Assembly: GCF_021869535.1 (NCBI RefSeq)
Contig: NW_026262637.1
Span: 31,186,001-31,250,000, forward strand
Reading direction: 5' to 3'
From: Mytilus californianus
Taxonomy: Eukaryota
DNA length: 64,000 nt
Position 1 is the stretch's first letter. Each line of letters starts with the position of its first letter. Made by a program: the position numbers and the translations under genes. This document shows, one piece after another, positions 1 to 34,659 of this stretch. The notes beneath the pieces are model-generated. The model was not told the DNA's origin. It did not search any database and saw only the letters and a program-made list of their open reading frames with translations.

Positions 1-82
1 TTTTTTTATTTATATGCAATAATTTTTATTTATATGCAATAATTTTTATTTATATGCAATAATTGCATTATGGGAAATTGTT

Positions 83-214
83 TGACGTCACAAGGTCAAA
101 TTTGCAACAACGTTTGTGATTGGTCGATATAGTCGAAAATGGCAGCCCCTGCTTGACTCACATGTTGAAGTTGTACGTTTGATTAGCTGTTGATAGATAT
201 ATGAGAAGGTAACG
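83..214 (+). promoter_or_regulatory. Putative inward-facing promoter and first-exon donor within the left TIR
   Basis: Perfect CRE TGACGTCA at 83-90, CCAAT box (GATTGGTC) at 118-125, YY1-like AAAATGGCAGC at 136-146, AP-1 TGACTCA at 154-160, splice donor AAG|GTAACG at 208/209. Function is inferred. Confidence 0.45.
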
Positions 215-432
215 CTTTGTGTAACTGTTTGCATTCCCCCCTTTCTTTCTCAACACGCATGCATGACCAAGAATTAAAAAAACGCGTCGCCCCACTAACT
301 AAATCTTGCGTTCATGCGAGTCCGGCATTGCAGGCTGTTACTGTTAGTGTTACTGTTAGGATTATGTACCCTTGTGTTGATTCAATACTAAACATATGGA
401 AAGTTTATAGAAAATCCATAGTCCAAATAATA

Positions 433-508
433 ATGACGTCTGGCAAGGCTATTTTGATTTTTTTCTTGGACGCCTTCCTGCGACCAAAATAGCCTTGCCA
501 GACGTCAT
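433..508. repeat. 24-bp perfect inverted repeat (hairpin) inside the TIR
   Basis: ATGACGTCTGGCAAGGCTATTTTG (433-456) and CAAAATAGCCTTGCCAGACGTCAT (485-508), with a 28-nt spacer. Mirrored at ~33121-33196. Confidence 0.9.
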
Positions 509-2724
509 AATATTATTTAGACTAGAACATCCACAGCCTTTTCTATTTATCCTTGTTCCCTCAAATAAGGCAATTTAATGACTGATAGATATAGGATTAT
601 TGCGAGCATTGAAATTTTCTCAAAACAAGTTTATTACTTTAGTTATAATAATGGTTAAAACAAATAAGAATTTAGCTCAAATTAAGTACACCTTTTAGGG
701 TGCACTTGACTGGCTCAGCACAAGATGTTTGGGAATTTACAGGTTGCTTATATTTTTTTGTAAACAATTAATAAACACAAGCACATTTTAGAAAAGCAAG
801 TGAGTAATCTATGTTTGAAATTTTATAACAAAAATCTCTGTATTGCAGGCTGTGGATTTTCTATAGAATCTTGGTTTATTTGCCACAAAGTACTCGCTTT
901 GTTTATAAAAAATCCGTAAACCAGAACTGGAAATTGACAGCAGGTTCATCAGATGGAAACACTTGTTGGAAAGAGTTGCGGTACATCTAATAACCAATGT
1001 AAAAAAGTGCCGAAATATGCACCACAATGGCCGTTTATGGAAAAATTGGAATGTGTTCTAGTTCCCATCTCTGAATCCCCGAAGTAGATTTTTTTTCCAC
1101 GTCCCACTGTGGTTAATAATTACTATATGTCTTTGCATATTTCAAAACATATTTTTCTTCAGGAATTCTTAGCTCTCTAGAACTTTTATTTGTCAGCATA
1201 TTTTGTTCATATTTATACACATAATGAGAACTATATATATATTCATAGCCTCTCATAGGACAACTTGTTAGCACTGACTAGAATAATGCTAAGTAACATA
1301 AAACTAAGATTAAGTTCAAATTCGGGTGGCTTCACTTTGACTGTTTCTGAGTTATGTCTTTTCCCATTTGCACTTGTTCTCCACCTATTTAAGCATGACA
1401 ATCAATCCATTTTGCCAGTGGGGGATCCATGTCATCAGACACAATCTTGTTTAATTATGCGACCACAAAAATATATTTAGGATCATAATAATGGTATGAT
1501 GAAGTCATCGTTGTCCATGTCGTCTGCGTCGTTGTCCTTAATATTAGACACATTACGTTTCCGGACAATAACTTTAGTTTAAGTGTGGATCTAGATATGA
1601 TTTTTTTTTTAGAAGGTTCAATACCACAAGGTTAGGATTAATTTTGGATGATGGTCCCAACGGAATGGAATTCAGACTCAAAGGGGGCCAAAAATAAGCA
1701 TTTTTCTTTAAGTTATTATCATGAACTTAGAAAAATGCATAATATATATAAGAAAAACACATAACAAATCAATAACAAACAAACTGGGCATCAATGAATA
1801 CATTTTATGATTTATAATCACCAGAGTATGAAATGAAGTACTATGCAAGCTTCCAAGTCATGCAAGTAATTCCAAAGTGTCCCATGTAAAAAGCATTATC
1901 GCTATTAAATTTTTAGGAAATTTTCCTTCGATCTTGCTGACTGGTGATTTCCTTTCTCAGCAGGAGTCAAGACGGAGTGATATGAAAAATTATCGCAAGA
2001 AACTAATGAGGCACATGGATCCTAATGAAACTGACAATGTCCTCATAGTTACAAATAGCGATCAACAAATTATCATTGCAATTGGTCATCTCAACTGGAT
2101 TGCTTTTCTCATTTTAGCCATATCATCTCAGGCGAGAAAATCAATCTTGTTGAGATGATCAATGATGATCTGTAAGAACATGTATCTAAATTATATGCCT
2201 TTTAAAGCTAAGCCTTTTCCTATTGATTTAGTATGGTTCATCAAAAATGATTTACTTTAATTAGAAAATGAGTTATTCAGTCTATGTATTCAGTTTCTGC
2301 GCAAAGTTTCAAAAATTCTCAAGTGCCTAATATAAAAAGTAAAATATTAAATATTTGGTTAACAAATAACAAACATGTGTTACTAAACTATTAGGAATAA
2401 AAAGAGAGGAGACAACTCGCGAAAGCATTTGTAATCACACTGTGTGAGAAATTGTGAACTAAGTTTCCACATCCCATGTCAGAATCTTTCATAATAAAGG
2501 TTGCAGTCTTGAAATTGACTGCTCCATAGGCTTACATGCAAAACAGCTGATCTTTGAAAATAAAAAATAAAAAAATAAAAAATGCTACATAGAAAAAAAA
2601 ATTCATGTTCATATCATGTATGTACTAATGTGAAATTGTGATTTAATCGAAAAAAGGGGGTTCTTGCCACGAAGAATAAAAAGTTACTCAATTCTGAAGT
2701 CAAAACATTTTTTTCCTACTTTCT

Positions 2725-3198
2725 CAGGGGTCGAAATTAGCGCTGGTGACCAGTAGAATTTACGTCGGACCAGTAGATTTTTTCAGCTAGTGGTCCGGCG
2801 GACCAGTTGAATTTTTTCGATAAAATTCTCTGATTGCATCACAATCTCAGTTTATTTACATTACAAATTACCTGAGAAATCAATAACGCGATACTGGAGG
2901 TATAAAAATTGATTACATTAATTAATATCTCTGGTGTTCGTCCTTCACAATAAACAAAATATGGAAATTTTCGGAAGGGGTTAAAACTTTCTCAAAATCA
3001 GGATGCAAAAACTTCTTTGACCAATGTATAATATATGTAAACAAAGGCATGAAAATAAAAGTAAGCATCTTTAATTTATGTTGGAGTTTGTCAAATGTAT
3101 TTTTTTCAGGACCAGTAGATTTTGTGCAGGACCAGTAGAGTTTTCAGTCCACTGGTCCGGCTGGCCATTACACAAAAAAACCTTAAATTCGACCCCTG
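2725..3198. mobile_element. Small MITE with CAGGGGTCGAA termini
   Basis: TIRs CAGGGGTCGAA / TTCGACCCCTG, flanked by a CTTTCT direct repeat. Repeated GACCAGTAG motifs inside. Confidence 0.7.
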
Positions 3199-3881
3199 CT
3201 TTCTGTTTGCTATTTTTACTAGGCCGCACCACTTCCAGTAAACATGATATCCTTCCACTTTCCTGGATTGATATCCCCAAAAGATGCAAGATTTTTTTTA
3301 AAGCCTATATATATGTTTCAATTCAGCATAAACCTACATGTATAATCAAACAGAAAAAATTGAGTTCAGAAAAAAATTCAGAACAAAATGCACTATTTTG
3401 TTTCCCTCCATGTTTTGAATGCACCCGAAATTGGAGTTGTAATACAAGACTGGTACCTAAAGGTTAATACAGTCAAATATTAAATACAATACTGACTGCC
3501 AATCATGCCTAAAGTTTTTAAAATCTGACAAAGTCAAAGATGAAGCTAGTTACAAAAATTACATCCTTGGTCCCTTGCTATTACAGCCATTACACATTGG
3601 TGGGTTTTCATAGCGCTCAAAAGTGACTAAAGCCCTCAAAACCCTAGCTTAAACCCAGATTCACACATGCATGTTTATTTCTCTGAAATGAAAATATTTA
3701 AGTTATACCCTTGATTGTTCAGAGTGTAAAATATCACTCATTTTATAATACATAGAAATCTGATAAATTGCAGAATACTATACATGCTGTAGCTACAAAT
3801 GTAACACCATATTAGCTGTGAAATATTGGCTCATGTGATAGGTTTGATGGCTTAATGAAATTCTTCCTTTTTTTGCAGAAG

Positions 3882-5385
3882 ATGGCAACATACCCAGATC
3901 ATGAAGAGCAAGAAGAGACTATTTTTGAACAAAAATTTCAAGACTTGGACGAAACGTTATCATATTGTGAAAATATCCCAGATAACCCTCCAAATTGTGA
4001 CATAGAATACTTTCGCAACAGATTGAAAAGTGCAGTGGATTGCTTAAATTGTTTAGAATTTAATTTAGTTATAAATAGAGCTGATCAGAGCTTAATTGAT
4101 AAAATTCAAACCCTATTATCTTGTCTTCAGCCCCTGAGAGAACATTGGAGCACGATAGATTTTTCTATGCCATCTAGTTTCTTGAGCATTGTTGATGGAG
4201 CAGGATGTATTTCAGCGACTGATAGGCTGGGAAGGCCTCCTGCTTTTATATGCACCGACCAAGTGGAATATTTGTTTAAAATTGGTTTTAAGATAGGTGA
4301 AATAGCCAGAATGTTCTTAGTGCACAGAACAACACTATGGAGACGACTTAAATATGAGGAGAAGAATCTGGTTAGACATACTATGATAAATGATTCAGAA
4401 TTGATGTCAGTGATGCGAGAAATCGTTAACAGTCAACCACATACTGGTGTGAATATGATGATTGGCCACTTAAAAGCAAAAGGTATAAGTGTGCAACAGT
4501 CACGTGTAAGGAGAACTCTGCGTGATATTGATCCAGGAAGCACCTTGATACGATGGGGCTTAACTGCAGTTCGCAGGAAATACTCAGTTGCAGGGCCTAA
4601 TGACCTATGGCATATTGATAGACACCATGCGCTGATCCGCTGGAAATTAGTAACACATGGAGGTATTGATGGTTTTTCGCGATTAATAGTGTTCTTAAAA
4701 TGCTCGAACAACAACTTGGCGGTCACTGTTTTGAACTCGTTTTTGGAAGCAGTTGAATCGTACTCATTACCATCTCGAGTCAGAGGTGATCAAGGAAGTG
4801 AAAATGTTTTAGTTGCTAGATATATGGAAGAAAGGCGAGGCTCTGATCGTGGTAGTTTTATAGCAGGAAAATCTGTGCACAATAGCAGAATTGAAAGGCT
4901 TTGGAAAGATGTTTATTATGCTGTAATTCAAACATTCTATTCATTGTTTTACTATCTAGAAGGAAATGATCTGCTAGATGTTGATAATCAAAAGGATCTG
5001 CTGTGTTTACATTATGTGTTTATACCTCGTATCAACGAAGCACTCTCTCAATTCGTAGTGGCATATAATAGTCATGGGTTAAGAACAGAACGTTGTTGGT
5101 CACCACAAAAGATCTGGGTGAACAGCATGATTAAAAAAAAACATTCATTCAGCTGAACTGAATAGTGAAAATATTTTAATTGATGGAATTGAGAAGTATG
5201 GAATAGACCCTCATGTTAATGATGTTCAAACACATGGTGAAGATATTGGCTCATTGGACATGCTGAATATGCAACCAGATCATGTAATTGTAGATGTGGA
5301 TAACTTGTTGAGTCAGGTTGACCCTCTTATTCCAAGTAATGAACATGGAGTTGATGTTTATCTTGCTGCAAGAGAGATTGTATGA
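3882..5385 (+). CDS. IS3-like (RNase H fold, DDE) integrase/transposase with N-terminal HTH modules; +1 frameshift in an A9 run near the C-terminus
   Basis: A splice acceptor (TTTTTTGCAG, ends 3878) sits just before the ATG at 3882. HTH-like segments [17 protein letters not shown] and [25 protein letters not shown]. Catalytic motifs [14 protein letters not shown] and [11 protein letters not shown]. The given ORF stops at 5156. Removing one A from 5133-5141 extends the frame through YGIDP...[14 protein letters not shown] to TGA at 5383-5385. Confidence 0.85.
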
Positions 5386-5626: not shown

Positions 5627-6740
5627 AACAAGAGTGTACACACTGAAACGTCTCGCCTGCTTTACTTTTCACTGATATTATGTTGAAAGTCCTAAATATA
5701 AAGCTTAACTATAACTATCACACATGATCCAAGAAAATGAGGTCATATAAACCAATCAAGAAAAACAGCTGAAGGACGCCTCTGGATGTGGGAATTTCTC
5801 GCTACATTGAAGACCTGTGGGTGACCTTCTGCTGTTGTTTTTTCTATGGTCGGGTTGTTGTCTCTTTGACACATTCCCCATTTCCATTCTCATTTTTATG
5901 TCATGTACATGTCACAATCATTCTATACACTAAATATAGTAAGTTGACCTATGGCTTATAAATAGCTTCAAAGAAACAGACTGAACTATGAAAACTAAAC
6001 AATGACCGATGAAAATGAGGTCAAGGTCACATGAACAATACTTGGCAGACAATTACAGCCTACTATACTTCCATACAACAGACATATTTGACCTATTGCT
6101 TATAGTTTTACACCAAAACACAAAACTTAACACCTTGCAATGAACAGTGAAAATGAGGTAAAGGTCAAATAAAACCTGTGAGACTGACACATAGATCATA
6201 AAATATTTCTATGCATCAAATATAGTTGACCTATTGCATATACAATTTAATATTACAAAAAGACTAAAACTAAAAAAAAATATTTTTTTTATCTCTGAAC
6301 CATGAAAATGAGGTAAAAGTCAGATGACACCTTACAATCATTCCATATAGTAAAAGAAAAAAGACAACAAAAAAATAACAACTGAACCATGAAAATAAGG
6401 TCAAGATCAGATGACACTTGCCAGTTGTACATTTTCACCTTTACAGTCCTTCCGTACCAGAAATATTGCTTATATGATATCCAAGATATGGACTTGACCA
6501 CCAAAACTTTACCTTGTTCACTGATACATGAAATGAGGTCGAGGTCAAGTGAAAACTGTCGGACAGGTATGAGGACCTTGCAAGGTATGCACATACCAAA
6601 TATAGTTGTCCTATTACTCATTTCAGACAGAATTTACATTACAAAAAATCTCCAACCTTTTATTTTTTCAAATAGTCGCTGAACCATGGACATGTGACAG
6701 ATGGAAACTTCATAACATAAGCCATCTATATACAAATTTT
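5627..6740 (+). mobile_element. Degenerate non-autonomous repeat with internal GAAAATGAGGTCAAGGTCA tandem units (Helentron-associated/HINE-like family A)
   Basis: Same 5' end (AACAAGAGTG..CACAC) and subunits as 12927-14743. Interrupted by a SINE-like fragment at ~5760-5910. Confidence 0.7.
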
Positions 6741-7869
6741 ATGTCGCCTGCTAATCACAGAACATGTAAGAGTCACTTTGACACTACATGTCGTCAGCAT
6801 CAAAAAAAACCAAAGCTTCAAAAATATGTCGAGAAACTTAATAATGCACAAATATGCATGGTTTATTTCAATATCAGTTCATTTTGGTTTTTTTGTAAAC
6901 ATTGACCCCTGCTGGTGGCAATATTTTTCAACAGACCGGAGAAAAACGAAGACCATTTGTTCAGGACATGTCATAGATCATGACTTTTTAAGTTTCAAGA
7001 TTTTTGAAAATCGGAGGCTCACAATGACCCTGCATGTGTAGCCCTTTTGGCAATCCTTTTTTGGTCTAGATTTTCCACATATCTTAAGAGCTTTATAATA
7101 TTCAAATATATGTATGGTTTAATTTGTTCACATATCAGCTACTTTGTACTTGAGAAATTGGAAAAATATGATTTCCCGTAGGGTTTCTATGTAAACTTTG
7201 AACCCTGGCTGTGGCCATTTTTCGTCAGACCAGAACAAAATAAGGATTTATGTAAAGTTTCAAAACATTTTGCCTAGTAGTTTCAGAGACAATCTTTGAA
7301 AATTGGCCAAACAGAATCTAAGATTTGCTCTAGCGGACATGTTTTTCATTGGACTAGAACAAAGTAGGGTCATTTGTTAAGGACCTTGCACTGACCATTC
7401 GTGCAAATTTTACTTAAAATCTGTCAAGAGGTTTCAGAGAATGAAAATGTGAAAACTTTATGACAAATGATGGTCATAACTTGATGGCAATTGGACTTTT
7501 ACTTAGGTGAGCTAAAAAGTGTTTATGAAAATCTTCAAAATTTATTATAAATTTCCAAAAACATACATGTAAGAATGTGGGTTTTTGCACTTGGACCTAT
7601 ATATACACATAACACATACTTTAATAAAACATTTTAATGAAAATAAACCTGACAGTTATGTTCTCCATAAATTGCAAAACAAAAGTTCATAGTATTATGA
7701 TAACATTAGATCTAAATATTTTATTTTCAACAACTCATCAGTTTCCCTAACTGTTATACATGTTTTACAAAATAATCAAACTCAGATGTCTGTGCAGTTT
7801 GAGTCAAACAACAATTTAACATATAATACACCCGAGTTTCTTGTTGTTCAAAACTATAACATAATAAAA

Positions 7870-8740
7870 TGTTTGGCAGGGCACAGCTTGACACGACCGC
7901 AGAAGTGGAACCCTGAAAAGTGGGAGCAAATATGGACACAACATTCGAGTTTCATACAGCTCTGAATTTGGATTGTGATTAAAAAGTTGAAACTGCATAG
8001 GTTTCTGACACAGAATGAATGGGGTCTAAAAGCTGAAAAGTTTTAAATTGGACATTCACTTTTTATGGTCCATTTTCCAAAATTTAAATACATGGTTAGA
8101 TTCAGCGTATCAAAGAACCACAAGAACTCAATTTTTGATGAAATCAAATAAAGTTCCAATTTTGGACCCTTTAGACCTTAATGTGGACCAATTTGATAAC
8201 GGGGCCCAAATATCAAAAATCTAAATACATGGTTAGATTGAGCATGTCAAAGAACGAACCCCTTATATTCAATTTTGGTTGAAATCAAACAAAAGTTTAA
8301 TTTGAACCCCTATTTGGACCAACTTGAAAACTGGGCCCATAATTAAAATTCATACATTTTCAGATTCAGCATATCAAACAACCCCAAGAATTATTTTTTT
8401 GTTAAAATCAAACTAAGTTTAATTTTGGACCCTTTGGATCTTACTGTAGACCAATTCGAAAACAGGACCAAAAATTCAGAATCCAAATACACGGTTAGAA
8501 TCGACATATCAAAGAACCCAAATAATTCAATTTTTGATGAAATCAACAAACAAAAAAAGAGTTAAAATTTTACCCTTTTGGCCTCTTCCTCCTAAACTGT
8601 TAGGACCAAAACTCCAAATATCAATCCCAACCTTCCTTTTGTGGTAAAAAACCATGCGTTTAAATTTCATAGACTTTTATTTACTTATACTAAAGTTATT
8701 GTGTGAAAACCAAATGTCTATGGACAACGACAACATGATA
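7870..8740 (+). mobile_element. Non-autonomous repeat family B (GTTAGATTCAGCATATCAAAGAACCCC units)
   Basis: Homologous to 15405-16630 and 19630-21100. Confidence 0.7.
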
Positions 8741-8883: not shown

Positions 8884-9125
8884 TCATGCCAGTCCAAAGC
8901 CTGGTGAGTTTGCAATTCCAAAAGTCATGTGTTTTCTGAATGTATTAAAATCTACTGAAACTGGAAGCTTCAACTCCATTGAGCATGTGTTTGCTTTTGG
9001 AAACAATCCTGAGTCATGAAGAAAAGTAATAGATGGTGATGGATCAAATCCTAATGGAGGTACACAGTCTGCTCCAGTTGCAAATGATAAAACATCACCT
9101 AAGGTAATTTCACCATCCTCATCTT
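8884..9125 (-). CDS. HECT C-lobe terminal exon with catalytic cysteine
   Basis: LGDVLSFATGADCVPPLGF...FPKANTC...ANSPGFGLA*. The acceptor TTTCAG ends at 9126. Confidence 0.9.
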
Positions 9126-10083
9126 CTGAAATAAGACAAATAAAAAAAAATTTATACAAAATGTTGACTTCAGTTGAGGTTTACTCATGTTTATACAAAC
9201 CAGGTAAGTAATTGAATGACCAAAACCAACAGCCAAGCTGGTAGTAGATCAATCACAGGGAATGTCCATATAGTCATAATTATACAAAAATCAAAGAGGA
9301 TAACTGATTCATTAAATGTTATGTAACAAAGTTGAACTTGAGTTGGCTATAAAAGCTAAACAACCTCACTCAATAAACTTTCATATTACTACATGAACAA
9401 TATTTTTTATGCTTCACATCTCAATGAGGTCACAATATGAAATAAAACAAAGTCTGTCTTTACATGGTTTATTATATCACTGGTCCCTAATTTTTTTAAA
9501 GATAAAAACAATGACAAGAATGTGTCCAAAGTACAGGGATGCCCTACTCGCATTATCATTTTCCTTGTTCAATGGACTGTGAAATTGGTGAAGTTTCAAA
9601 GTTGAAGGCACATAATTTCAGTCAAATCAGCAGAGCAGAAAGAATGGTATACTTTTATCTGCAAATTTTTGAAAAAAAGTTGGGATGGACTGTGGACCAG
9701 TCAAAAACATCATTTCCTTCGCAACTTGGTTGCCTTCGGTATAATAACATGCATTGTGAGATACACCCAGTCCCCCATGCAACATTCAGAGCAAGTGATA
9801 TTACGTGTGCACATCTTCATAAAATGTCCCTCTGTATTGCACTGACTGGATGCAAGGAGTTGCAGCTATAGTGATTTTTACTTTTACTTAACAAAATTTT
9901 AATTGCAATTATGACAGCATTGGCTGACCTAGAAGTCACGGCCACACAAGACTTTAAATCTCGCAATTTGAAGGGGTAAATTAATAAACTGCTTTGCTGA
10001 GCACAGCTGGATATGCTCTCAGAGGTCCAACCCTGAATAGTTGGGGCAAAAATGGACACAATATTAAAGCTTGATACCGGTCT

Positions 10084-10667
10084 AAAGGAGTAGGTCCAGT
10101 AAGGGCCGATTTTGGCCTCAAATTTCAGGTTCTTCTAACGAAAGATTTTAGACACTTTTTAAACACTGAAGTGTCTATTTCAATTGATTCAATTAGTTTA
10201 TGTGACATATTTTAACTGATGTAGTCATTAAAAACGCTTCGATTCAAGCTAAAATATGAAAAATCTATCAAATATGCCAGGAAACGTCACTTTTCGGATG
10301 GTTTTTGTCAAAAATGAAAGTTGCCGCATCCGTGTTCATCCTCAACCTTTATATATGTTATGTATTATCATCAAATAGAACTTACATTTCAATATTATGA
10401 ATGAACACGAATGCGGCCACTTTCATTTAAGATGGAAACCATCTAAAATCTAACCAAAATGCTAAAATTGTGAAGATTTCAGTAATTTAGCATGACTTCA
10501 TGATGCTAGTTCCCGATATATGTGCATTGTATTGTCAAAAACAGTCCATATTTATGTAGCAGAAGCATTCTACTTTCCAATAAATAGCTAACAGATTACA
10601 TTTTCAAAATTTTGTAAAACTGCTATATTTTGGGGCCAAAAAGGGGTCTTATTGAACCTACTCCTTT
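10084..10667. mobile_element. MITE, Kolobok-like termini
   Basis: TIRs AAGGAGTAGGTCCAGTAAG / CTTATTGAACCTACTCCTT, nested in a family B fragment. The TTAA-type target is degenerate, so the superfamily call is tentative. Confidence 0.6.
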
Positions 10668-11530
10668 GGATTGTATAGAATATTTGACATAAAGGTTTCT
10701 GAATAAATGTAGTCAAAGAACTTGAAATCTGTTATAAAAATTGAATTTATATTCAATTAAAGATTTCTTGCTGTGCTGTTGCTCAATACTTAGTAAATCT
10801 GTTGTCAGACTATAAACAAATAAATTTCAATAATAACTCAATGTTAGATATCAAAAATTTAATAAAAAAAACCTATAGGGAGGTTATCTTTATAGATATA
10901 AATCAGACATCAAAGTTTAATAAAAACTAGAGGCTCTAAAGAGCCTGTGTCGCTCACCTTGGTCTATGTGAATATTAAACAAAGGACGCAGATGGATTCA
11001 TGACAAAATTGCATTTTGGTGATGGTGATGTGTTTGTACATCTTACTTTACTGAACATTCTTGCTGCTTACAATTATCTCTATCTATAATGAACTTGGCC
11101 CAGTAGTTTCAGTGGAAAATGTTAGTAAAAGTTTACAAATTTTATGAAAATTGTTAAAAATTGACTATAAAGGACAGTAAGTCCTTAGGGGGTCAATTGA
11201 CCATGTTGGTCATGTTGCCTTATTTCTAGGTCTTACTTAGCTGTACATTATTGCTGTTTACAGTTTATCTCTATCTATAATAATATTCAAGATTATAACA
11301 AAAAACGGCAAAATTTCCTTAAATGACCAATTCAGGGGCAGCAACCCAACAACCGGTTGTCCAATCCATCTGAAAATTTCAGGGCAGATAGATCTTGACC
11401 TGATTAACAATTTAATCTCTTCAGATTTGCTCTAAATGCTTTGGTTTTTGAGTTATAAGCCAAAAACTGCATTCTACCCCTATTTTCTATAACAATTCTT
11501 ATTATCAATCCAATACTTTCTAAATACTAC

Positions 11531-11706
11531 CTTTTGAACTTCTCCTCTCAAGTCACCATCTGCTATATCTTCAATATTCCTTTCTCCAGCTTGTCCCACT
11601 AACGCATTGTACATAGCTGGAGAAAGGAATTTTGGTGATGGTCCTCTGTGTACAATGGATAGGGAAAAGAATAATCCAACATCTCTGTACAGATTGTCTT
11701 CTAGGG
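11531..11706 (-). CDS. HECT domain internal exon (absent from the ORF track)
   Basis: Translates as ALEDNLYRDVGLFFSLSIVHRGPSPKFLSPAMYNAL...IEDIADGDLRGEVQK, with canonical AG/GT boundaries. Confidence 0.8.
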
Positions 11707-21385: not shown

Positions 21386-21509
21386 TATTATATAATAATT
21401 TACACATCCTGTTTGGTGTGTATCTCCTACCATATCATTATTATTTGCTTTTAAATATTAATCAGAAATAACCAACTTAAAATGAAAAATTTTAAAAGAA
21501 AAAAAAAAG

Positions 21510-22215: not shown

Positions 22216-24190
22216 AATGCATGAATTTAGCTAACAAAGTGTGGTCATGAAAATGAACGTCAGCGAGTCGATCGATCTATATAAAAAAAAAATTGTTGTA
22301 GGGGCAAAAGATATAAAATTTATTTCATGAAAAGCTTAACGTTAACATCATCATGATGATCCATTTATCTGAATGTGTCACAAGATTGCTATTTAGTGTT
22401 ACATGCACAATTGTTAATTACAAACTAGACTGTACTGTCTTCAAGGGAACCTGTATGTCGCCTGCATTTTATTCATAGCATTGCACACATTATTTATGTC
22501 CACAGTCCACTATGTGTAATTTCAAAGTTTTTGATAAACAGGATGTAGTTGAGTGACAGCAATGAAAAACAATTCTAAAGGATAAAGCATAGAGATGCAA
22601 AATATCAAATGTCTGTACTGCATGTAGTTGTAGAGAAAACTGCAATGAAATTTTGCATACATATTTGACGAGCATGCCTTAAATATCAAAGTTTTTGGTA
22701 TTAAATAGGAAGTACATAAGCAAAGCCATGAAAATGCTTTACGCGTCATAGTACTTCGAGATAAAGCATTCTCCAAAATATTAAGTCTGCTGCATGTAGT
22801 TGATAAGAAAACTGCAATGAAAATGTGTGACAACATTGCGGTGCATATGCGGCAAAGGTCTTGGAAAGATGGATTTTGTCAAAGTGACCCCTATATAAAA
22901 CACAGGCGACATAAAAATATATTATATGTATCAGTATATACATGAAGTGCACTTGGATAAGAATATTAATCTATAGGTACATAGAGTGAGTATGATAGTA
23001 TTACCAAGCATTTCATACCTGTTGTGTGTCGAGTACGAATACAATTTTCTGCCACTGTACAAATATTGTTTTTATCCTGTATTTATAAAATGTACAAATT
23101 ATTTTTTCATACCAACAGAATAACAGAAAGACATTCTTAAAAAAATGATTCCATATGAACACATCATATAGGAAAGCATGAATCATGTAAAATTAAAATG
23201 GGTCAAAGACAGAAAGGGCCAGTTTTTGTTAAACAAGAAGAAGAGCTACAAACCTCACTCTGAAATCACATCTCATTGATGTGAGAGCCCATACAGAAGC
23301 TGCATACCAAATATGAAGAGCCTGTGATTTTTAGTTCCTGAGATAAATATTAAAAATACAGTATTTCCCTGCGACCAACATTCACATATTATAATTAAGC
23401 TGATTTTTCAACTCGCAAAATCCAGCCAAAAATCATTAATCTAACTTGAAGGTAAAAGACCATCATCCTACATGTAGCAAGAGCAGAAACATCACCTTCA
23501 TGTGATCTATCCACATGCAAAATAATAAAAGCCTATCACAAATTTTAGGTACATGCTAGACATGATTTTGTTTTGAGTGGCAGCTGACGACTGATTACTA
23601 TAGTGTGACCACCACTAAGAAACATTGTTTTATTTATTGTCGATTAAAACTACATGTGTAATATCCTGTGTTCTATGGTTTTGAGCTCTAAAAAGTTATG
23701 ATGCTGCATAATTACCTGTAAAGAGTGTGTCTTGCCGAATACTGGAAGTTCCTCGTCTGTCATGTCTGTGTCATCTAATTTGTTTTGATCCATCATGTCC
23801 ATATCATTTTCGAACTAAAAATGAATTCATACTTGTAAAACAACTATCAATATTTTTGCAGTAAGATACTATATCACTAATTAGAAAACTTTTTATGTGT
23901 GTTAACGAACATTGCAAAAAATCTGCACCCATCCCCCCTAAAAGAAGAACATTACATTAAATTATATTTCTTTCCTTTAAATGGATATTGCAACTCCCTC
24001 AAGACTCATTATACAGTTTGATGTTATTAATTCTTTAATAAATATTTTGCGGCCCATATTTTGTCATACAACTAAAAGTAGGTGTTTTACTGTTTACTTT
24101 CTCAGGTAACATTTAACTTTGTGATCAATGCTTATGTGTAGTTGTCCTTCATGTATAGTTATACAATATTAAACTGTATTTGTCATATAA

Positions 24191-24889
24191 CAGTCAGGGG
24201 TACTACTTAAACAAGTGATTTCATTATCACCTATTTCAGTGATTTTTTAAATTCAGTTATCACCTATTTAAGTGATTTTGGTGCTTCCTTTGATCTTCAA
24301 ATGCTAATTTCATTGATTTTCCATATTTTCACAAACTTTTCTATAATTTTCCTATATAGATCAATTATCCCTTTATCTTTGGATATCAATTTCACTAGTG
24401 CGCTTGGCCAGTAAGTTAGTGCGCTAAAGCTTTTAAAAGTACCCTTGGGAATTGTTCTGTAATCAAATATTCATTAACTACTCTTACTATCAGACAAAGG
24501 TCAACAATATTAGGTAACCTGATTGGTTTTCTTTATAGTTAGAATGACTTATTTCAAGGTTATGTCCTGATCTACAAATTATTCCAGTTTTTGCATATTT
24601 AAATAAACTGTAAAAACTGACAGGCTTATCAAGCAAAAGACAATTTCTGCATGTACATAGTTGTCTTTTCAATTGAATTCTTGTCTTTTTACCAATAAAA
24701 AAATCAAGCTTATGGGAAAAATATCAAAAAAATGTTATAAACACTTATTGAAGTGATTACATTTTAACTTCTCAAATTACTTGTTTCAGTGATTTTAAAA
24801 AGTCTGTGCGAAAATTTTTAATATTTCACAGACAAAATCACAAAAAGAAGTGATTCTGAAATCACTTGTTTAAGTAGTACCCCTGACTG
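24191..24889. mobile_element. Second MITE with CAGTCAGGGGTACTACT termini and 5-bp TSD (TATAA)
   Basis: Same terminal 17 bp but a different interior. TATAA at 24186-24190 and 24890-24894. Confidence 0.9.
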
Positions 24890-26746
24890 TATAAGTAACA
24901 TTATACTTTTAACATAAACAAAAATAACAACAACAATAAAATAACTGAGTGGAACACACACATATCTATATATACACAAGTAAAACTAACTAAGAGTTCC
25001 CTGTCCTCAGTTCTTAAAAGACTGTTGTTAAAAACATAATAAAGGAACCTGTTTTTTCTGACACTTGGTTTATATTTGACGGATTTAGTAGGACTACTAG
25101 TTTTTCAGTATCAGATAGATTTGGAAACATAGGATTATCTATTGCCATGTCATTAAAAGGTTTTATACGTAAAGCATTATTAATTTGACAGTGGAGGAGA
25201 AAGTGATTTTCATCTTCTAAGGTTTTACAAGTTGGACACGACGTAACGTTCTATTGTTTTGAGGTATGTTTAGATTATCTGCCCTTCAATGATCAAATTA
25301 TGGTAACTAATTCTAACTTTTTGTAAATAAACGTCTAGTTTGTTTCAAAAATTTGGATGAAGATAAAATTTTTGGTCTTGTTTGACTTTAATATTTTTGA
25401 ATGAAAGAAAAAGTTTGTTATTTTCATTTAAACTGTTCATGTTATTTTCCAGTAATTCTGAATTAAAGTTGCATGTAATATTCTTAATCAAAGTCTGTAG
25501 TTTTTCACTTGTTCCATATTTTGACAGGACACTATTTTTTGTATATCAATATTCATTTCTTGTGTTGAATCTACCAGAATTTTTCTAATTCCATTTTTTT
25601 GGAAAATATTGTACAATGAATGATAAAATACAATGTACACACCTCAGGGCCCTCGACGAGAACATATAGCTTCCCTTGACCAATCAGAGCCTTCAGCCCT
25701 ATTCCATCAAATTTGAATGTTGATGGTTCATTTGGTTTGGATAATTTTTTATGGGAGCACGATAAAAAATTGATCTTGGTGGGATCTTTGTCAGTACTGT
25801 CAAATATGTCAAGTAGTTTGTTTTTAATAGTGTCCTCTGTATCCTCCGAACTTATGTTAATTAATCCTTCTTCTAGGATAATATCTGCACACAGAATGCC
25901 TGGCAATTTTATATTTCCAATAAAAACAACTTTATATGACTTTTCAAATAACTTCTTCTTCTTCTTCATTTGTTGTCTGATGTCTTTTCTGGAGGCAGCT
26001 CCCTGTATTGGTGAGAAATGTGTCCTTGGGTGTGAAGTGGCTTTTGACGACTTAAACACAGAAGCAATCTGCTGAGCCCATCCACTTGTACTTGGCCTGT
26101 TGCCAATGATATCTCTTGCTTGTCCTATATTAAGTAAATATTATTATAGTAAAATTAAAAAGATAAAATTAAAGCAGTTGGCGATTATCATGACAAAATT
26201 TTAAACTAAACAATTATTTGGAAAGATATTACTTCAGGTAAATGTATCACAACTTAAAGACACGGTATCATACCATAATTTTTCAACACATTTTTTGGCG
26301 GTCATGTACTCGTCTAAAAGTACTGAAGTTAATTAGGTATCAAAAATCCTTTCACCCTTTTTATCATCTGTTTCACCCCTTATTTTCCAAAACAGTATTG
26401 GGTAGAAAGCTCAAAATCACTCACAGTCATAGTATAGTACTCAGATATCTTATTTTCAAAGTTCCTAAAGAACAATCAACTAATACTTTTAAATCATTCG
26501 ATAGTATTGCAAAAACAATTCAGAGAATTTGCTCAAAAGATATAGGTTTAAAAAGAGCCTGTTCGAGACATAATTCATTGAACTTTTTTTTCATCAATCT
26601 GCAACAAAAGTGGGCAACTGATCTTTGCCAAGCTATTAGGTTTTTTGTTGAGTTTCATCAATACAAAGAGCTCAGCACCTGTACATGCTGTAGTTTTGTT
26701 GTACAAAAAAATAATTGATTTTTCTACCAACCATGAATGTACATAC

Positions 26747-26993
26747 CAGCACGTTCTGCTGTTGTTACAACAATATATCTTCTTGTTCCCCAACCTCCAT
26801 CTGGAGAAGAAAACCCTCTTGTATCAGCTGCAACGGCTTTCAACACCCCTCCTACATGGTACCTCAAACCCACTGCTGAAGGAAACTGTGATTTGAGTGT
26901 CTCCCTCTCCAAAACATCTTCTTTAAGTGGCAATAAGACCTCAGCATCATAACAAAGTTCACTATGTGAAACCTTTATATGACCTGACATCAT
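26747..26993 (-). CDS. First coding exon: TDP-43 N-terminal (ubiquitin/DIX-like) domain
   Basis: TLKSQFPSAVGLRY...SSPDGGWGTRRYIV parallels human TDP-43 TVTAQFPGACGLRY...HAPDAGWGNLVYVV. Acceptor at 27002-27001, donor at 26746-26745. Confidence 0.8.
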
Positions 26994-27419
26994 ATAAACC
27001 TAAAAACAGAAATATGGAAACCAATTATTGATCAGAGTCTGAATCGTTCACCTAAAATATCATGACAATTGCCACCAAATATTTGAAATTTGGGAACACA
27101 ACTGGACTATTTTAACTCACTTGTGCATATAATTCTGGTTTCCATTGGCATTGATTTTGAATATTTTTTCTAATACATGTATATCCCTATCCTCTCCTCT
27201 CTATTTATATTTCACAGGCACTTGGGTTCCCAGCCAGATATACAGGGAAGTAAGAATAGTCCATTTTTATAAAAATTAGCAACCATGGGCCTGTGTTACA
27301 ATGTATCTGAGTGCCCAAGAAACCCATAATGGCATTTATAACAAGAAGTAATTGTAACAAGATGCTGTTACGAAGTCTCCCAAACAAAGCTCCCTTAATT
27401 TGCAATTCCTATGGTCACA

Positions 27420-28060
27420 AATTCATTTGATTTGTTTTATTGTCCCATACAAGAACATATATATGGTCTAGGGACAAAGATCTTGATCGTTTACAATTTA
27501 TCAAACATGAGGGGGTGGGGGTGACCCTTACGGACTGCACCTATATTTCATTTGAATTGCGTTGTTATCCCATGCGATATGCAAGAATATGGTTAAGGGG
27601 TGGGGATCTTGACCATTTACAATTTATCAAACATAAGGGGATGGGGGTGCTCCCCATAGACATCCCCTACATGTAATATTTCGTTTTATTTGTTTTATTG
27701 TCACATACAAGAATAAATGGTTTACCGTTTAGGGTGGGGATCTCAACCATTTAAAATATGTTCAAACATGATGGGGTAGGGGTGACCCCGATGGACTCTC
27801 CCTATTTTTCATTTGATGTGTTTGTCCCATACAAGAATATATATGATATAGGGGTGGGGATCTTGACCGTTTACAAGTTTGCAAACTAGAGGGGGTGGGA
27901 ATGACACACACCCCCAACTTCCCTTTAATTTCATTTGTTTAACTGTCCCAAACTAAAGTATATATGGTTTAGGGGTGGGGATCTGAACCATTTACAAGAT
28001 AATAGCACATTCTCAAATTGAAGGGGGTGGAGTGACCCAGGGACTCACCTTTAGTTTTAT
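27420..28060. repeat. Degenerate tandem repeat with GGGGTGGGG motifs
   Basis: TGTCCCATACAAG...AGGGGTGGGGATCTTGACC units recur about five times. Confidence 0.65.
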
Positions 28061-28507
28061 TATCCTGTGATCATTTTTGAAGACTATGTGTCTTTCACTT
28101 GCTGTTTTCAAGTTATAGATATAGGAAGTCATGTTGTGTGAATGCCAAAGAGACAACTCTCAATCCAAATAACAATTTATAAAAGTAAATAACCAGTATA
28201 ATAATACTAATTATAGGTCAATGTACGGCCTTCAACATTATAGTCATTTAAAATTAAAAAAAAAATAAAAACCCATAGGGTTCTGTAGTAAAACTGTCCC
28301 TTCCTTATGCCTCCCCAAAATACCCCTTAATAAACCCCGATACTGCATGCACAAACGAAAGGTTGATGGCTCCCCTAATCATATTAATTAGTCTAACATT
28401 TTATGAACCCTAAGTATATCTGACAAGCAGTTTTGGAGAACAAGTTTATTTTTCAAAACGTATCGGAAGAAAAAGAAAAATAATAATAAAAGTAATATGA
28501 ACAGAGC

Positions 28508-29885
28508 AACAAGAGTGCACACACTGAAATGTCTCGCCTTCTTTACTAATCATTTATATTATGTTGATAGTCCTAAATATAAAGCTTTATTACAACTGTC
28601 ACATAAACTTAACATTAACCAAGTAAACTAAACATTGACCAATGAACCATGAAAATGAGGTCAAGGTCTGATGAACCATGCTAGGCAGGCATTTACAGCT
28701 AACAATTCTTCCATACAACAAATATAGTTGACCTATTGTTTATAGTTTAAGAAAAACAGACCAAAACACAAAAACTTAACACTGAGCAATGAACCTTGAA
28801 AATGAGGTCAAGGTCAAATAAAACCTGCCTGACTGACATATAGATCATAAAATATTTCCATACACCAAATATAGTTGAACTATTGCATATAGTATTAGAA
28901 AAAAAGACCAAAACTCAAAAACTTAACTTTGACCACTGATCCATGAAAATGAGGTCAAGGTCAGATGACACCTGCCAGCCAGACATGTACACCTTACAAT
29001 CATTCCATACACCAAATATAGTAGACCTATTGCATACAGTATAAGAAAAACAGACCAAAACACCAAAACTTAACACTGAACAATGAACCTTGAAAATGAG
29101 GTCAAGGATAAATAAAACCTGTGTGACTGACATATAGATCATAAAATATTTCCATACACCAAATATAGTTGAACTATTGCATATAGTATTAGAAAAAAAG
29201 ACCAAAACTCAAAAACTTAACTTTGACCACTGAACCATGAAAATGAGGTCAAGGTCAGATGACACCTGCCAGCTAGACATGTACACCTTACAATCATTCC
29301 ATACACCATTTATAGTTGACCTATTGCATATAGTATTAGAAAAAAAGACCAAAACTCAAAAACTTAACTTTGACCACTGAACCATGAAAATGAGGTCAAG
29401 GTCAGATGACACCTACCAGTTGGACATGTACACCTTACAATCATTCCATATACCAAATATAGTAGACCTAATGCTTATAGTATCTGATATATGGACTTGA
29501 CCATGAAAACTTAACCTGGTTCACTGATCCATGAAATGAGGTCGAGGTCAAATGAAAATTGTCTGACGGGCATGAGGACCTTGCAAGGTACGCACTTACT
29601 AAATATAGTTATCCTATTACTCATAATAAGAAAGAAATTAACATTACAAAAAATGTTGACTTTTTTTTCAAGTAGTCACTGAACCATGAAAATGAGGTCA
29701 AGGACATTGGACATATGACAGACGGAAACTTCGTAACATAAGGCATCTATATACAAAGTATGAAGCATCCAGGTCTTTTAGCTTCTAAAATATAAAGCTT
29801 TTAAGAAGTTAGCTAACGCCGCCGCCGCCGGATCACTATCCCTATGTCGAGCTTTCTGCGACAAAAGTCGCAGGCTCGACAAAAA
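28508..29885 (+). mobile_element. HINE-like family A, third copy
   Basis: Same 5' end, subunits and 3' hairpin as 12927-14743, with fewer internal units. Confidence 0.75.
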
Positions 29886-31434
29886 CAATTAGTTTGGGAG
29901 ACTAAATAATAAGAACAGTCTTTGCAACATTCCTGTGGAGTGCAGTGTGTTGAACCTTCTATCAGTAGATACATTTTGTACATTGAAGGACCAATATGGA
30001 TACACTTTTAGTATTTGACATATTGCAGAGAATGGTGGGTTGACTCAGTCCCACAAAGCATATTTGACACACAAAAAAGGTTTGGATAATCTATAAATAT
30101 GCTTGGATATATAATCTATTGATAACCTGATCGACTACTTTTCAAATTGACAAAAGACTTCAGACCAGAAATAGAGTCAAACTCCTACCTGAAGATCTAT
30201 TCAAAAAGTGTTTGTTTGTGCAACCCGACTTGATTAAATAGTCATAATGAATTTAATTCATTGAAATGTAACATGCTATCATAGATACTTAATTTCCCAT
30301 TCATTGTGTCACAAAAAAGGGTTAAAATGGAATCAACTTGGAGACAATTTGACTGAACAGAATGGAGTGTGAGCCATACGTGTTCATTTTTATCAATGGA
30401 GATCACTAAAACTTGTTATAGAGCCAAGGGATATTTGTGTTTTAAATATACAAAATCTAGAGCACTTGCAAGTAAGAAATTGATATTTTCAGTCATATAA
30501 AAGACCATAACTCTTACTCTATATATATGACAAATCTGGCTGACACTCAAGCCTGTCTATGAATTAATGGATATTAAGCTGCATGCTTTTAAATTTCATG
30601 AATCAATCAACAAACAAATTGTAGAATCCTTATATAAGTGAATTAAGAGCTGTGATATAAGTACATGATAAGCCCATTGCCCCTTTAGCTTGTCTTTATG
30701 CTTTAAATGATTTTTTTTTACATTAATTAAGCGGTTAGATTTCTCATTTAAATTGTTTGACAGCTGTCAATAGGGATCTTACATCAATAGATATAAACAA
30801 TTCACCAAAGTTTCATGAAAGTTGGTGAAAGTGTTTTAGGGTTATTATTGTTCCACCCTTTTTTAAGTATAAAAGTTCATTACTGGAAAACGTATAATCT
30901 GAAATTTATAAAAATTGGAAGGTACCTTAAGCATCTTAAGCCAACAGATATAACATGTATACACAATTCACCAAAATTTTGTGAAAGTGTTTATGAGTGA
31001 TTGTCCGGAAACTGGAAAATTCCACCTTTTTTAGGCATAAAAATTCATGACACAGAAACATAAACTGTGAAATTTTAAAAAAATCGAAAAAGTCACATAT
31101 ACAGTATGTCAATAGATATAAACAATTCACCAAAGTTACAGACAACGGTATACAATAAAATGTCCGGTATTAGACAGGCGTATAAAAATGACACTTTTCT
31201 GTCAAACAAAGAGCCATAAATCCTGTTCTTGGGCTTATGCATTTTAAGCAAAAGTATCCATACCGAGGTGCCATAAAGAGAGAAAATCAATGGATGGAGA
31301 ACAAAACAACAAGATGGTGACACATTCAACATACAATTTGGAATATTTACTTGTATATTAAAGGACTAATTCCCCCTCCCCTTCCCCATTTTCCTAATGT
31401 AAATATAAATTTAATCCATTCAAAAAATAAAACA

Positions 31435-32268
31435 AGTGAAACTACAAGCTACTGCTCACTGATGATACCCCCGCCGCAAGTGGATAATATTAATAGTGTA
31501 AAAATATGCAAGTGTTCGGTAAACAGGAAGTTGTTGAGTGATGAATCTGAAAACACATCACACAGTATAGCTGACTTATATAAACCCTGAAACCAAATTT
31601 CAGAAATCCTTGTATTGAAGTTCCTGAAAAAATGTGAAGAAAACTTTCAACTTGGCTATCATGTTTAAAATCATACAAGTGTTAGGTAAACAGGAAGTTG
31701 TTGAGTGATGAATCTGAAAACACATCACACGGTATAGCTGACTTATCATGCTTATACATGTTATATAAACCCTGAAATCAAATTTCAGAAATCATTGTAT
31801 TGTAGTTCCTGAAAAAATGTGATGAAAATTTTCAACTTGGCTATCATGTGTAAAATCATACAAGTGTTCGGTAAACAGGAAGTTGTTGAGTGATGAATCT
31901 GAAAACACATCACACGGTATAGCTGACTTATCATGCTTATACATGTTATATAAACCCTGAAACCAAATTTCAGAAATCATTGTATTGTAGTTCCTGAAAA
32001 AATGTGATGAAAATTTTCAACTTGGCTATCATGTGTAAAATCATACAAGTGTTCGGTAAACAGGAAGTTGTTGAGTGATGAATCTGAAAACACATCACAC
32101 GGTATAGCTGAATTACATAAACCCTGAAACCAAATTTCAGAAATCATTGTATTGTAGTTCCTGAGTAAAAATGCAAAAATATTCATGGGACGGACTGATG
32201 GAAAGATGGATGGACAGACAGAGTTAAAACAGTATACCCCCCCCCCTTTTTTTAAAGCGGGGTATAAT
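31435..32268 (+). mobile_element. Non-autonomous repeat with 167-185-bp internal tandem units
   Basis: CAAGTGTTCGGTAAACAGGAAG recurs at 31509, 31676, 31861 and 32046. Ends in CCCC..TTTT..GCGGGGTATAAT and abuts the inner edge of the right TIR. Confidence 0.7.
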
Positions 32269-33414
32269 CCTAGTCAGTGCTAACAAGTTGGAAACGACAA
32301 ATTTTCAATCATATAAAGGGCAATTTCTCCTTGAAATAAAAGTGAATCTGGCTGAAATTCGAAATTGTCCTATGAGAGGCTATGAATATATATATAGCTC
32401 TCATTATGTGTATAAATATGAACAAAATATGCTGACAAATAAAAGTTCTAGAGAGCTAAGAATTCCTGAAGAAAAATATGTTTTGAAATATGCAAAGACA
32501 TATAGTAATTATTAACCACAGTGGGATGTGGAAAAAAAATCTACTTCAGGGATTCAGAGATGGGAACTAGAACACATTCCAATTTTTCCATAAACGGCCA
32601 TTGTGGTGCATATTTCGGCACTTTTTTACATTGGTTATTAGATGTACCGCAACTCTTTCCAACAAGTGTTTCCATCTGATGAACCTGCTGTCAATTTCCA
32701 GTTCTGGTTTACGGATTTTTTATAAACAAAGCGAGTACTTTGTGGCAAATAAACCAAGATTTCTATAGAAAATCCACAGCCTTCAATACAGAGATTTTTG
32801 TTATAAAATTTCAAACATAGATTACTCACTTGCTTTTCTAAAATGTGCTTGTGTTTATTAATTGTTTACAAAAAAATATAAGCAACCTGTAAATTCCCAA
32901 ACATCTGGTGCTGAGCCAGTCAAGTGCACCCTAAAAGGTGTACTTAATTTGAGCTAAATTCTTATTTGTTTTAACCATTATTATAACTAAAGTAATAAAC
33001 TTGTTTTGAGAAAATTTCAATGCTCGCAATAATCCTATATCTATCAGTCATTAAATTGCCTTATTTGAGGGAACAAGGATAAATAGAAAAGGCTGTGGAT
33101 GTTCTAGTCTAAATAATATTATGACGTCTGGCAAGGCTATTTTGGTCGCAGGAAGGCGTCCAAGAAAAAAATCAAAATAGCCTTGCCAGACGTCATAATT
33201 ATTTGGACTATGGATTTTCTATAAACTTTCCATATGTTTAGTATTGAATCAACACAAGGGTACATAATCCTAACAGTAACACTAACAGTAACAGCCTGCA
33301 ATGCCGGACTCGCATGAACGCAAGATTTAGTTAGTGGGGCGACGCGTTTTTTTAATTCTTGGTCATGCATTCGTGTTGAGAAAGAAAGGGGGGAATGCAA
33401 ACAGTTACACAAAG

Positions 33415-33546
33415 CGTTACCTTCTCATATATCTATCAACAGCTAATCAAACGTACAACTTCAACATGTGAGTCAAGCAGGGGCTGCCATTTTCGACTAT
33501 ATCGACCAATCACAAACGTTGTTGCAAATTTGACCTTGTGACGTCA
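33415..33546 (-). promoter_or_regulatory. Mirror copy of the putative promoter/first-exon donor in the right TIR
   Basis: Same motif cluster on the minus strand, pointing toward the TDP-43N-HECT gene. Confidence 0.45.
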
Positions 33547-33564
33547 AACAATTTCCCATAATGC

Positions 33565-33990
33565 AATTATTGCATATAAATAAAAATTATTGCATATAAA
33601 TAAAAATTATTGCATATAAATAAAAAAACGACAATTATACCAATTGAATGAAAAATATTGCAGTACAATGACAAGTTATACAAATTGAATAAAAAATATT
33701 GCATTTGAATGACAAATTATACCATTTGAATAAAAAATTATACCATTTGAATGAAAAATTATACCATTTGAATAAAAAATATTGCATTTAAATGAAAAAA
33801 TATACCATATAAATGAAAAATTATACCATTAAAATAAAAAATATTGCATATAAATGAAAAAATATACCATTTAAATGAAAAAATATACCATACAAATGAA
33901 AAAATGTTGCATATAAATAAAAAAATATTGCATATAAATGAAAAAATATACCAATTAAATGAAAAATATTGCATTTAAATGAAAAATATC
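33565..33990. repeat. Subterminal ~20-bp tandem array (ATTGCATATAAATAAAAATT and ATACCATTTGAATGAAAAAT variants)
   Basis: About 20 degenerate units. The first three are mirrored at 1-62. Confidence 0.9.
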
Positions 33991-34659
33991 AAATTTTTGC
34001 AACCAATACCATGCCATAAATGATTAAAATAAATCACTTGCTATCTATATAATTATATCAATTGTCTCCTTACAAATATCCTAAATGAATGTTTGACATT
34101 TACAAAGGTTGTTTGCCAAATTCAGATAACTTCGAACACAATGTTTTTCTTCATATACAGGGTGCATTGAGAACAACAGTTTACTTGTTTTGATATGACT
34201 TTGCTGTATTATGTATATACGTCTGATGTAAAATGAAAATATAGTATGCAGTGCATTAATAATGTTATTTGCTAGCAATAAAATAATTAGAGTATTTCGC
34301 ATTTTCTTACTTGTTCAAAAGGTGAACATCAATTGGATGTATTGTTTTCACACTTCATTCCCTTCTTTATTTATCATCCATCTGTGAATTCTTTTATTTC
34401 ATCCGATGAAGAAATATTCCTTTACTTTCGGTTTTTATTCACTGTGGCTTTGACAGTGTGACATAAATAACCAAGGTAGTTAAAAAAAAATTTAATTGAC
34501 TAAAGATCTTTAAAATATGGAATTGTGATTTGATTTTTTTTTTTGTTTTAATTTAATGGGCCCAGATAAGCACAAAACAGTATTCTAAAGATCCGATGAA
34601 TATTCAAAACCAATTATAGAATTTAACAGACTTTACTCATATACATATCGAAAGTAATA

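Follow-up and report, generated by a model that had tools for sequence, protein, structure and literature searches.

A giant transposon of probable IS3EU/GingerRoot type in Mytilus pairs its integrase with a convergent HECT ubiquitin-ligase gene

Eukaryotic transposons of the IS3EU type are recognised by TA..TA ends and target-site duplications of 6 bp (PMC10045372). Fungal IS3EU families have TAYGG..CCRTA ends and 6-bp duplications, and carry passenger genes for a TET/JBP dioxygenase and an alpha-kinase (Kojima 2025, PMC12730594); these extra genes have been proposed to aid the element against host control (PMC12730594). Here we analyse a 64,000-nucleotide stretch of the genome of the mussel Mytilus californianus (NCBI RefSeq assembly GCF_021869535.1, contig NW_026262637.1, positions 31,186,001 to 31,250,000 of the forward strand; hereafter, the window). 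We are highly confident that positions 1-34018 of this window belong to a decayed copy of a giant (32-36 kb) IS3EU/GingerRoot-type transposon, which has terminal inverted repeats (TIRs) of ~1.65 kb, creates a 6-bp duplication, and contains two convergent genes, one for an integrase and one for a protein with a HECT E3 ubiquitin-ligase domain. Both IS3EU/GingerRoot elements and the presence of cargo in fungal IS3EU are known, and the pairing with a HECT ligase is new as far as the searchable literature shows: with Repbase lying outside this scope, no paper links HECT with IS3EU or GingerRoot, and ubiquitin goes unmentioned in both the GingerRoot paper and a broad survey of DDE transposases.

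The window contains one long inverted repeat, in which positions 1-1266 match 33628-32362 with 99.3% identity over 1,267 aligned columns, and the two genes lie between its arms and point inward, as the original prediction for this stretch had described. Read on the + strand, positions 1-34018 can be aligned collinearly with M. trossulus and M. coruscus copies, beginning within the left arm and ending at the right terminus, and 34018 is the point at which homology to all sister copies ends. The left TIR is cut by the start of the window, so that its inner ~1.27 kb remain (1-1266, + strand, 99.3-99.4% identical to the reverse complement of 32362-33628), corresponding to positions 391-1654 of the full arm. 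The right TIR is complete (~1.65 kb, 32362-34018, - strand, identified by its inverted match to 1-1266); over 1.64-1.8 kb, it shares 90-92.5% identity with arms from other copies. When four sister copies are aligned to it, the full arm comes to ~1,648 bp (32371-34018), within the ~1,640-1,650 bp seen family-wide, a length that agrees with the TIRs of more than 1.3 kb anticipated beforehand. From these alignments, we estimate that the true left end lies ~390 bp upstream of base 1 and that the full length is ~34.4 kb, such that 1-34018 would represent about 99% of one element copy. The interval 1-34018 had been put forward as the entire element; its right limit holds as an exact terminus, and its left limit does not, the element beginning ~390 bp earlier.

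The right terminus reads ...CCATGCCATA at 34018 and is followed by the hexamer AATGAT (34019-34024), as placed by a junction alignment of four copies (34009-34024, + strand). It is the reverse complement of the left terminus seen in sister copies, and the element accordingly has the ends TATGG...CCATA, the right one checked in the window and the left ones in sister copies; AATGAT is the expected right half of the target-site duplication of the window copy. Starting 34 bp inside this terminus is a subterminal array of a 21-bp unit in ~18-20 copies (33565-33989; period 21 and 20.1 copies by Tandem Repeats Finder, TRF); the motif recurs 18 times in the window arm, ~21 bp apart, and 17 times in a left arm from M. 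trossulus. By their position, these units are candidate transposase-binding sites. The two arms of the window copy are 99.4% alike, as against 94% between the left and right arms of other copies, and therefore have probably been homogenised within this copy, as by gene conversion. Across other copies, left arms are 99% identical to left arms, and right arms 98% to right arms.

The original prediction held that this structure is one mobile unit rather than a chance neighbourhood, and expected the same linkage of TIRs, integrase and HECT gene to recur at other loci and a target-site duplication to flank it. The linkage recurs at eight other Mytilus loci with unrelated flanks: at all nine loci, window included, the integrase is followed by a convergent gene with TDP-43_N and HECT domains. 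Collinearity between the window and a copy from M. trossulus (L001) begins within the left arm, and the arm of L001 matches the right arm of the window up to 34018-34057. When L001 is aligned to L002, which lies on a different M. trossulus chromosome, similarity sets in at one exact base, beyond which the two are 99.6-99.9% identical, with unrelated sequence up to that point, and the same abrupt junction is present in M. coruscus (L003 and L004) and in three further M. trossulus loci (L010-L012). Among seven left junctions with unrelated flanks, on different chromosomes or contigs, six read TATGGCATGGTATTGG (terminus TATGGCATGG) and one begins with TCTGG. Two copies are complete, each with a perfect 6-bp duplication on both sides: one in M. 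coruscus (CACVKT020002232.1:1019845-1052150; 32,306 bp, GATGAG), and one in M. trossulus (CM071708.1:67146688-67183163; 36,476 bp, GATTTA), the latter with an integrase interrupted by one insertion and an intact HECT gene. Shared termini, unrelated flanks and 6-bp duplications together support a single mobile unit.

Some ends in M. coruscus depart from this pattern. The variant terminus TCTGG, in place of TATGG, begins at position 4871 of L003, and another copy (L013, at ~5320) lacks approximately the first 97 bp of the left arm. In the reverse complement of L006 (31279-31550), the last ~270 bp of the right end are tandemly duplicated, yielding two right termini, and the target-site duplication is placed after the outer one.

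Intact, near-identical copies exist, with the same 508-aa integrase (P0272) occurring on several M. trossulus chromosomes and in M. coruscus, and the family therefore appears to have been active recently. Copies at non-orthologous sites in the two species (L001 and L010-L012 versus L004 and L013) are 99.0-99.5% identical over 10-16 kb, as compared to 99.6-99.9% within M. trossulus. Such near-identity across species may point to very recent activity combined with horizontal transfer, introgression or sample mixing.

The integrase gene (3855-5382, + strand; Pfam rva_4, PF24764, 1.6e-82) has a single coding exon, and six-frame reading together with Pfam assigns its core to a 433-codon open reading frame (ORF) that starts at 3855 on the + strand. 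The protein is laid out as a coiled-coil or helical N-terminus, two helix-turn-helix (HTH) bundles and a DD35E RNase-H-like core; in its AlphaFold2 (AF2) model, helices at the N-terminus are followed by two three-helix bundles and then by the RNase-H-like core, and Foldseek matches the model to IstA transposase and to integrase cores of the retroviral type. Residues D249, D306 and E341 (DD35E, with 35-residue spacing) are invariant in 21 relatives, including the window copy. The best matches among prokaryotic families in NCBIfam are IS481 (2e-9) and IS3 (about 3e-8 to 4e-8), both far below the cut-off. The model, the Foldseek matches, the DD35E triad and these best matches bear out the earlier assignment to HTH + HTH + DDE integrases of the IS3/IS481 type, and the kinship to eukaryotic IS3EU proposed with it finds support in TA..TA ends and 6-bp duplications that match those published (PMC10045372, PMC12730594).

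An intact transposase of this family consists of 508 aa encoded in a single exon. The gene in the window, whose annotated product is P0274, has one frameshift and one small in-frame indel and contains no internal stop in either of its two reading segments, which were analysed separately. Its product clusters, at 96-97% identity, with Mytilus proteins of three species (M. trossulus, M. coruscus and M. californianus), among them intact M. trossulus proteins of 508/515 aa. Two short Logan contigs with an intact integrase are collinear with genomic DNA and therefore silent on splicing and expression.

The convergent gene, which encodes TDP-43_N and HECT E3 ubiquitin-ligase domains, spans 8887-26993 on the - strand, as mapped by Pfam and by tblastn of the intact ligase P0285 against the window and L007. 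Pfam detects TDP-43_N in the first exon (26745-26999, 1.9e-12) and HECT in the last (8887-9180, 7e-9). P0285 has 758 aa and is encoded by 12 coding exons over 19 kb. Of these exons, searched one at a time against the reference and left unjoined, nine are detectable in the window, all without stops, and three are absent through two deletion or replacement events; the absent exons include two from the middle of the HECT domain, such that part of the N-lobe is gone and the domain is incomplete, although the last exon retains the motif around the catalytic cysteine.

P0285 contains a TDP-43_N-like domain (residues 17-76), a small alpha/beta domain (~168-250, in a moderately confident model) and a HECT domain (471-757), which Pfam detects at 2.2e-14, covering positions 12-305 of 306. 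A sequence-only search of the PDB with P0285 returned TDP-43 N-domains alone, and the HECT match required a profile: profile search leads to the HECT domains of AREL1, NEDD4 and SMURF over the full domain. In the AF2 model, the predicted local distance difference test (pLDDT) is ~90 over residues 390-755, and Foldseek recovers the HECT fold with a probability of 1.0 and a template-modelling (TM) score of up to 0.66. At least 90% of 27 relatives conserve the catalytic cysteine, C726. Profile and model together show that intact P0285 has a bilobed HECT domain with a catalytic cysteine near its C-terminus, and ligase activity is predicted from it. Comparison of the HECT gene of the window to that of an M. 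trossulus copy, with counts summed codon by codon over predicted exons, gives a ratio of nonsynonymous to synonymous divergence (dN/dS) of 0.27 (492 codons, synonymous divergence dS 0.06), indicative of past purifying selection.

The same two genes are associated well beyond Mytilus. In the scallop Argopecten irradians (L005), an integrase 53% identical to that of the window is followed by a convergent TDP-43_N + HECT gene, and the unit is bounded by a ~265-bp inverted repeat that starts TATGTG and is common to L005 and L008; the latter is a truncated second copy, in which the TIR is present and no target-site duplication was obtained. Scanning metagenome contigs with an integrase alignment yielded 80 loci whose integrases are 34-51% identical. 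Thirty of these loci extend at least 3 kb downstream of their integrase, and 20 of the 30 have a HECT gene on the opposite strand at a distance of 0.35-2.3 kb, and a convergent HECT gene is present in 26 of the 50 loci with at least 1.5 kb downstream. Two of them are complete two-gene elements with TATGG ends (L045, 7,444 bp, duplication GATAGA; L066, 7,468 bp, CACAGC), and a third (L078) has an intronless HECT ORF of 471 aa (Pfam 3.6e-12) facing the integrase. In a neighbour-joining tree built from the integrase cores, loci positive for HECT are scattered throughout. Among 16 other long metagenome loci, boundaries that end in TA and are flanked by duplications were found only in L063; the others may be degraded or run off the stretch. 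Two elements from different sources (L009, 9148-14796, and L063, 7936-12150) share nearly the same terminal 16-mer, TATGGT[A/G]GGCCGTTTG, and each is flanked by a perfect 6-bp duplication.

Because the ligase gene accompanies the integrase in scallop as well as in 20 of the 30 informative metagenome loci, we regard it as a conserved second gene rather than as cargo; of the intron-rich HECT ligase cargo originally predicted, the intron-rich HECT gene is confirmed, with 12 exons over 19 kb in a sister copy, and the designation as cargo is not. The pattern is most simply explained by an old element with two genes that has now and then lost its ligase.

Several other readings would account for part of this evidence. 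A local inverted duplication, or a mis-assembly around two unrelated neighbouring genes, might produce arms as similar as those in the window, which at 99.4% exceed the 94% of other copies, and the left arm runs off the window, leaving the structure incomplete here. However, the arms, the gene pair and the exact end recur in two other assemblies, at eight loci that have unrelated flanks, and perfect 6-bp duplications bound the complete copies. Together with the pair at all nine loci, these junctions and duplications rule out mis-assembly, a one-off inverted duplication and insertion beside a host HECT gene, and we give such an origin virtually no credence. A preference of the element for inserting next to HECT genes is likewise rejected, the HECT gene lying inside the duplication-bounded unit in four complete elements. 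Equally hard to credit is a composite transposon, in which two inverted 1.65-kb elements mobilise the DNA between them: the long arms do resemble those of bacterial composite transposons, and the integrase is IS3/IS481-like, but no terminus-like sequence occurs at the inner edges of the arms, the terminal 20-mer is present once in the window, at the outer end only, no solo arm was found in the 64 kb or in any fetched locus, and in compact relatives the gene pair is enclosed by short TIRs.

The remaining alternative, an ordinary small IS3EU that recently captured a host HECT gene in Mytilus as true cargo with no role, is improbable as well, although passenger genes do occur in fungal IS3EU (PMC12730594), the closest cellular HECT, that of G2E3, is ~31% identical, and complete relatives without a HECT gene exist (L009, 5,649 bp, duplication GGGGCG; L063, 4,215 bp, CTCCTT). 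These two elements also count against a two-gene transposon and imply that not every member requires the ligase in cis. Against a recent capture stand the same convergent TDP-43_N + HECT pair in scallop, its presence in 20 of 30 informative loci with integrases only 34-51% identical, including two duplication-bounded 7.4-kb elements, the scatter of HECT-positive loci over the whole integrase tree, and the purifying selection on HECT. Given that compact 7.4-kb relatives carry the same pair, the HECT gene seems to be an accessory gene conserved in a widespread IS3EU lineage, and not a recent local capture.

Other observations also weigh against a giant two-gene IS3EU/GingerRoot-type element in the window. 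The window does not include its own left terminus and contains only the right half, AATGAT, of the expected duplication, and no empty site or insertion polymorphism figures among the supporting evidence. The NCBIfam matches to IS3 and IS481 fall far below family cut-offs, as expected for distant kin, and the probable membership in IS3EU/GingerRoot is judged from structural hallmarks. The integrase of the window has been neutral since its split from intact copies (dN/dS of at least 1 at dS 0.01), and dN/dS of the HECT gene is 0.5-0.8 between other pairs of copies. With all of these points considered, the giant two-gene element remains the reading that we hold with high confidence.

Under this reading, the transposase would bind the subterminal 21-bp repeats of both arms, cut at the TA ends, and integrate with a 6-bp stagger, in a cut-and-paste process. 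Promoters in the arms would drive both genes inward, as hinted by an isoform of the integrase annotated by NCBI (X1), whose coding sequence starts 1.1 kb inside the left arm. Self-association may be mediated by the TDP-43_N-like domain. We tentatively propose, at somewhat less than even odds, that the ligase benefits the element by ubiquitinating proteins of the host or of the element itself, such as the transposase or factors in DNA damage, the cell cycle or silencing; it might instead serve self-regulation alone or benefit the host. The pairing raises the question of what use a cut-and-paste element makes of the ubiquitin system of its host.

Apart from its two genes, the element consists of AT-rich DNA with many satellite arrays. 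Ten further ORFs inside it have no credible Pfam domain, and Pfam detected no polymerase, capsid, protease or reverse transcriptase (RT) among the ORFs of the element, consistent with the earlier exclusion of a Polinton or long-terminal-repeat (LTR) element. One 147-bp satellite array sits in a HECT intron (13044-14468, by TRF), within a segment specific to the window (12854-15073), and a second, between the 5' end of the HECT gene and the right TIR (28625-29637, by TRF and self-BLAST), lies in a window-specific 3.3-kb segment (27810-31116); in a block map against the reverse complements of L007 and L006, neither segment is present in the M. trossulus and M. coruscus copies. The two arrays are 81-91% alike and in the same orientation. 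Arrays of 136, 161-162, 185 and 35 bp occur at 15494-16627, 19935-20196, 21165-21385, 21561-22121 and 31576-32115, and related satellite units at 6000-6688 and 7862-8714. In total, ~8 kb of the window copy are segments that other copies lack, mostly satellite arrays, and the length of the element is mostly due to HECT introns swollen by satellites and other insertions.

With its integrase frameshifted and its HECT gene missing 3 of 12 exons, the window copy is decayed and probably non-autonomous, and could be moved, if at all, only with proteins from intact copies in related genomes. Its divergence from the M. trossulus copies is mosaic, which suggests recombination between subfamilies: dS is ~0.01 for the integrase and ~0.06 for the HECT gene, and the arms differ by 6-10%.

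The DNA flanking the element in the window contains a 594-codon ORF (41177-42961, + strand) with weak, sub-threshold matches to tetratricopeptide repeats (TPR) and a 161-codon ORF (37297-37782) with a weak DUF19 match, both probably host genes or other repeats outside the element. A dispersed 160-bp repeat, 91% identical between its two occurrences (43836-43995 and 63425-63590), also lies outside the element, and no Rfam RNA family was detected in the window.

Among named proteins, the nearest relatives of the element's HECT protein are 'G2E3-like' ones, present in multiple copies in corals, a crinoid, many fishes and some frogs, followed by true G2E3 of birds, which at ~31% identity to the HECT protein of L078 has the closest named cellular HECT domain. 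Gains in G2E3 copy number, as in a hadal sea cucumber with 20 copies, have been read as host adaptation (PMC9700323), and a G2E3-like match has been reported in an unclassified fish repeat (PMC5638112). These published expansions and the fish-repeat match may represent the same transposon gene, and the constant place of the ligase gene beside the transposase in this family suggests that transposon genes account for many of the ligase genes annotated as 'G2E3-like' in aquatic animals. If so, inferences of host adaptation, as well as bivalve gene counts, need correcting. A further-reaching proposal, which we consider doubtful at present, is that HECT is an ancestral second core gene, needed by the element, of a metazoan-wide IS3EU/GingerRoot clade. 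Were it true, the multi-copy 'G2E3-like' genes of corals, echinoderms, bivalves, fishes and amphibians would be copies of the element's HECT gene, and the HECT module of vertebrate G2E3 may share this origin by domestication.

Cellular G2E3 is thus the closest named cellular HECT protein, and databases call the element gene 'G2E3-like', although the two differ in architecture: bird G2E3 proteins have PHD-type zinc fingers (PF13771, PF13832 and PF26054) before the HECT domain, whereas P0285 has TDP-43_N and HECT only, with the TDP-43_N-like domain in their place. Moreover, the element gene is multi-copy and located inside a transposon. The compact metagenome elements L045, L066 and L078 are close structural counterparts; they agree with the Mytilus element in gene order, convergence, TATGG ends, 6-bp duplication and a HECT protein with the same N-terminal region, and their rva_4 integrases are 43-46% identical, but they are four to five times smaller, have short TIRs, and encode HECT with few or no introns.

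Polinton/Maverick elements, Teratorn and the fungal Starships extend over tens of kb, some with long terminal repeats, and carry genes beyond a recombinase, and plant MULE (Mutator-like) and CACTA elements with ULP proteases are a precedent for ubiquitin-pathway enzymes in transposons. Unlike the first three, the Mytilus element has no polymerase, capsid, packaging ATPase, tyrosine recombinase or RT, and its size derives from introns and nested repeats rather than from many genes. With 32-36 kb and 1.65-kb TIRs, it ranks among the largest DDE cut-and-paste elements.

The described systems to which it is most similar are IS3EU and GingerRoot (PMC6839031; Kojima 2023, PMC10045372), which likewise have a transposase of the DDE integrase type without an HHCC zinc domain and with kinship to IS3/IS481, as well as TIRs, TA..TA termini (here TATGG..CCATA) and a 6-bp duplication, and which occur mostly in aquatic animals, oyster included. 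Those elements measure a few kb, in contrast to 32-36 kb here, where the TIRs of 1.65 kb contain a 21-bp subterminal array, and the HECT second gene is unmentioned in either paper (PMC6839031, PMC10045372). Fungal IS3EU (PMC12730594) share the IS3EU backbone and the possession of extra genes, one of which is opposite in orientation to the transposase. However, their accessory genes are different, their hosts belong to another kingdom, and their genes cross transposon superfamilies, whereas here a single gene has remained associated with one lineage of integrases, over a range that extends from cnidarian-like contigs to bivalves. Judging by the searchable literature, a transposon lineage that has a HECT E3 ubiquitin ligase of its own would be documented here for the first time.

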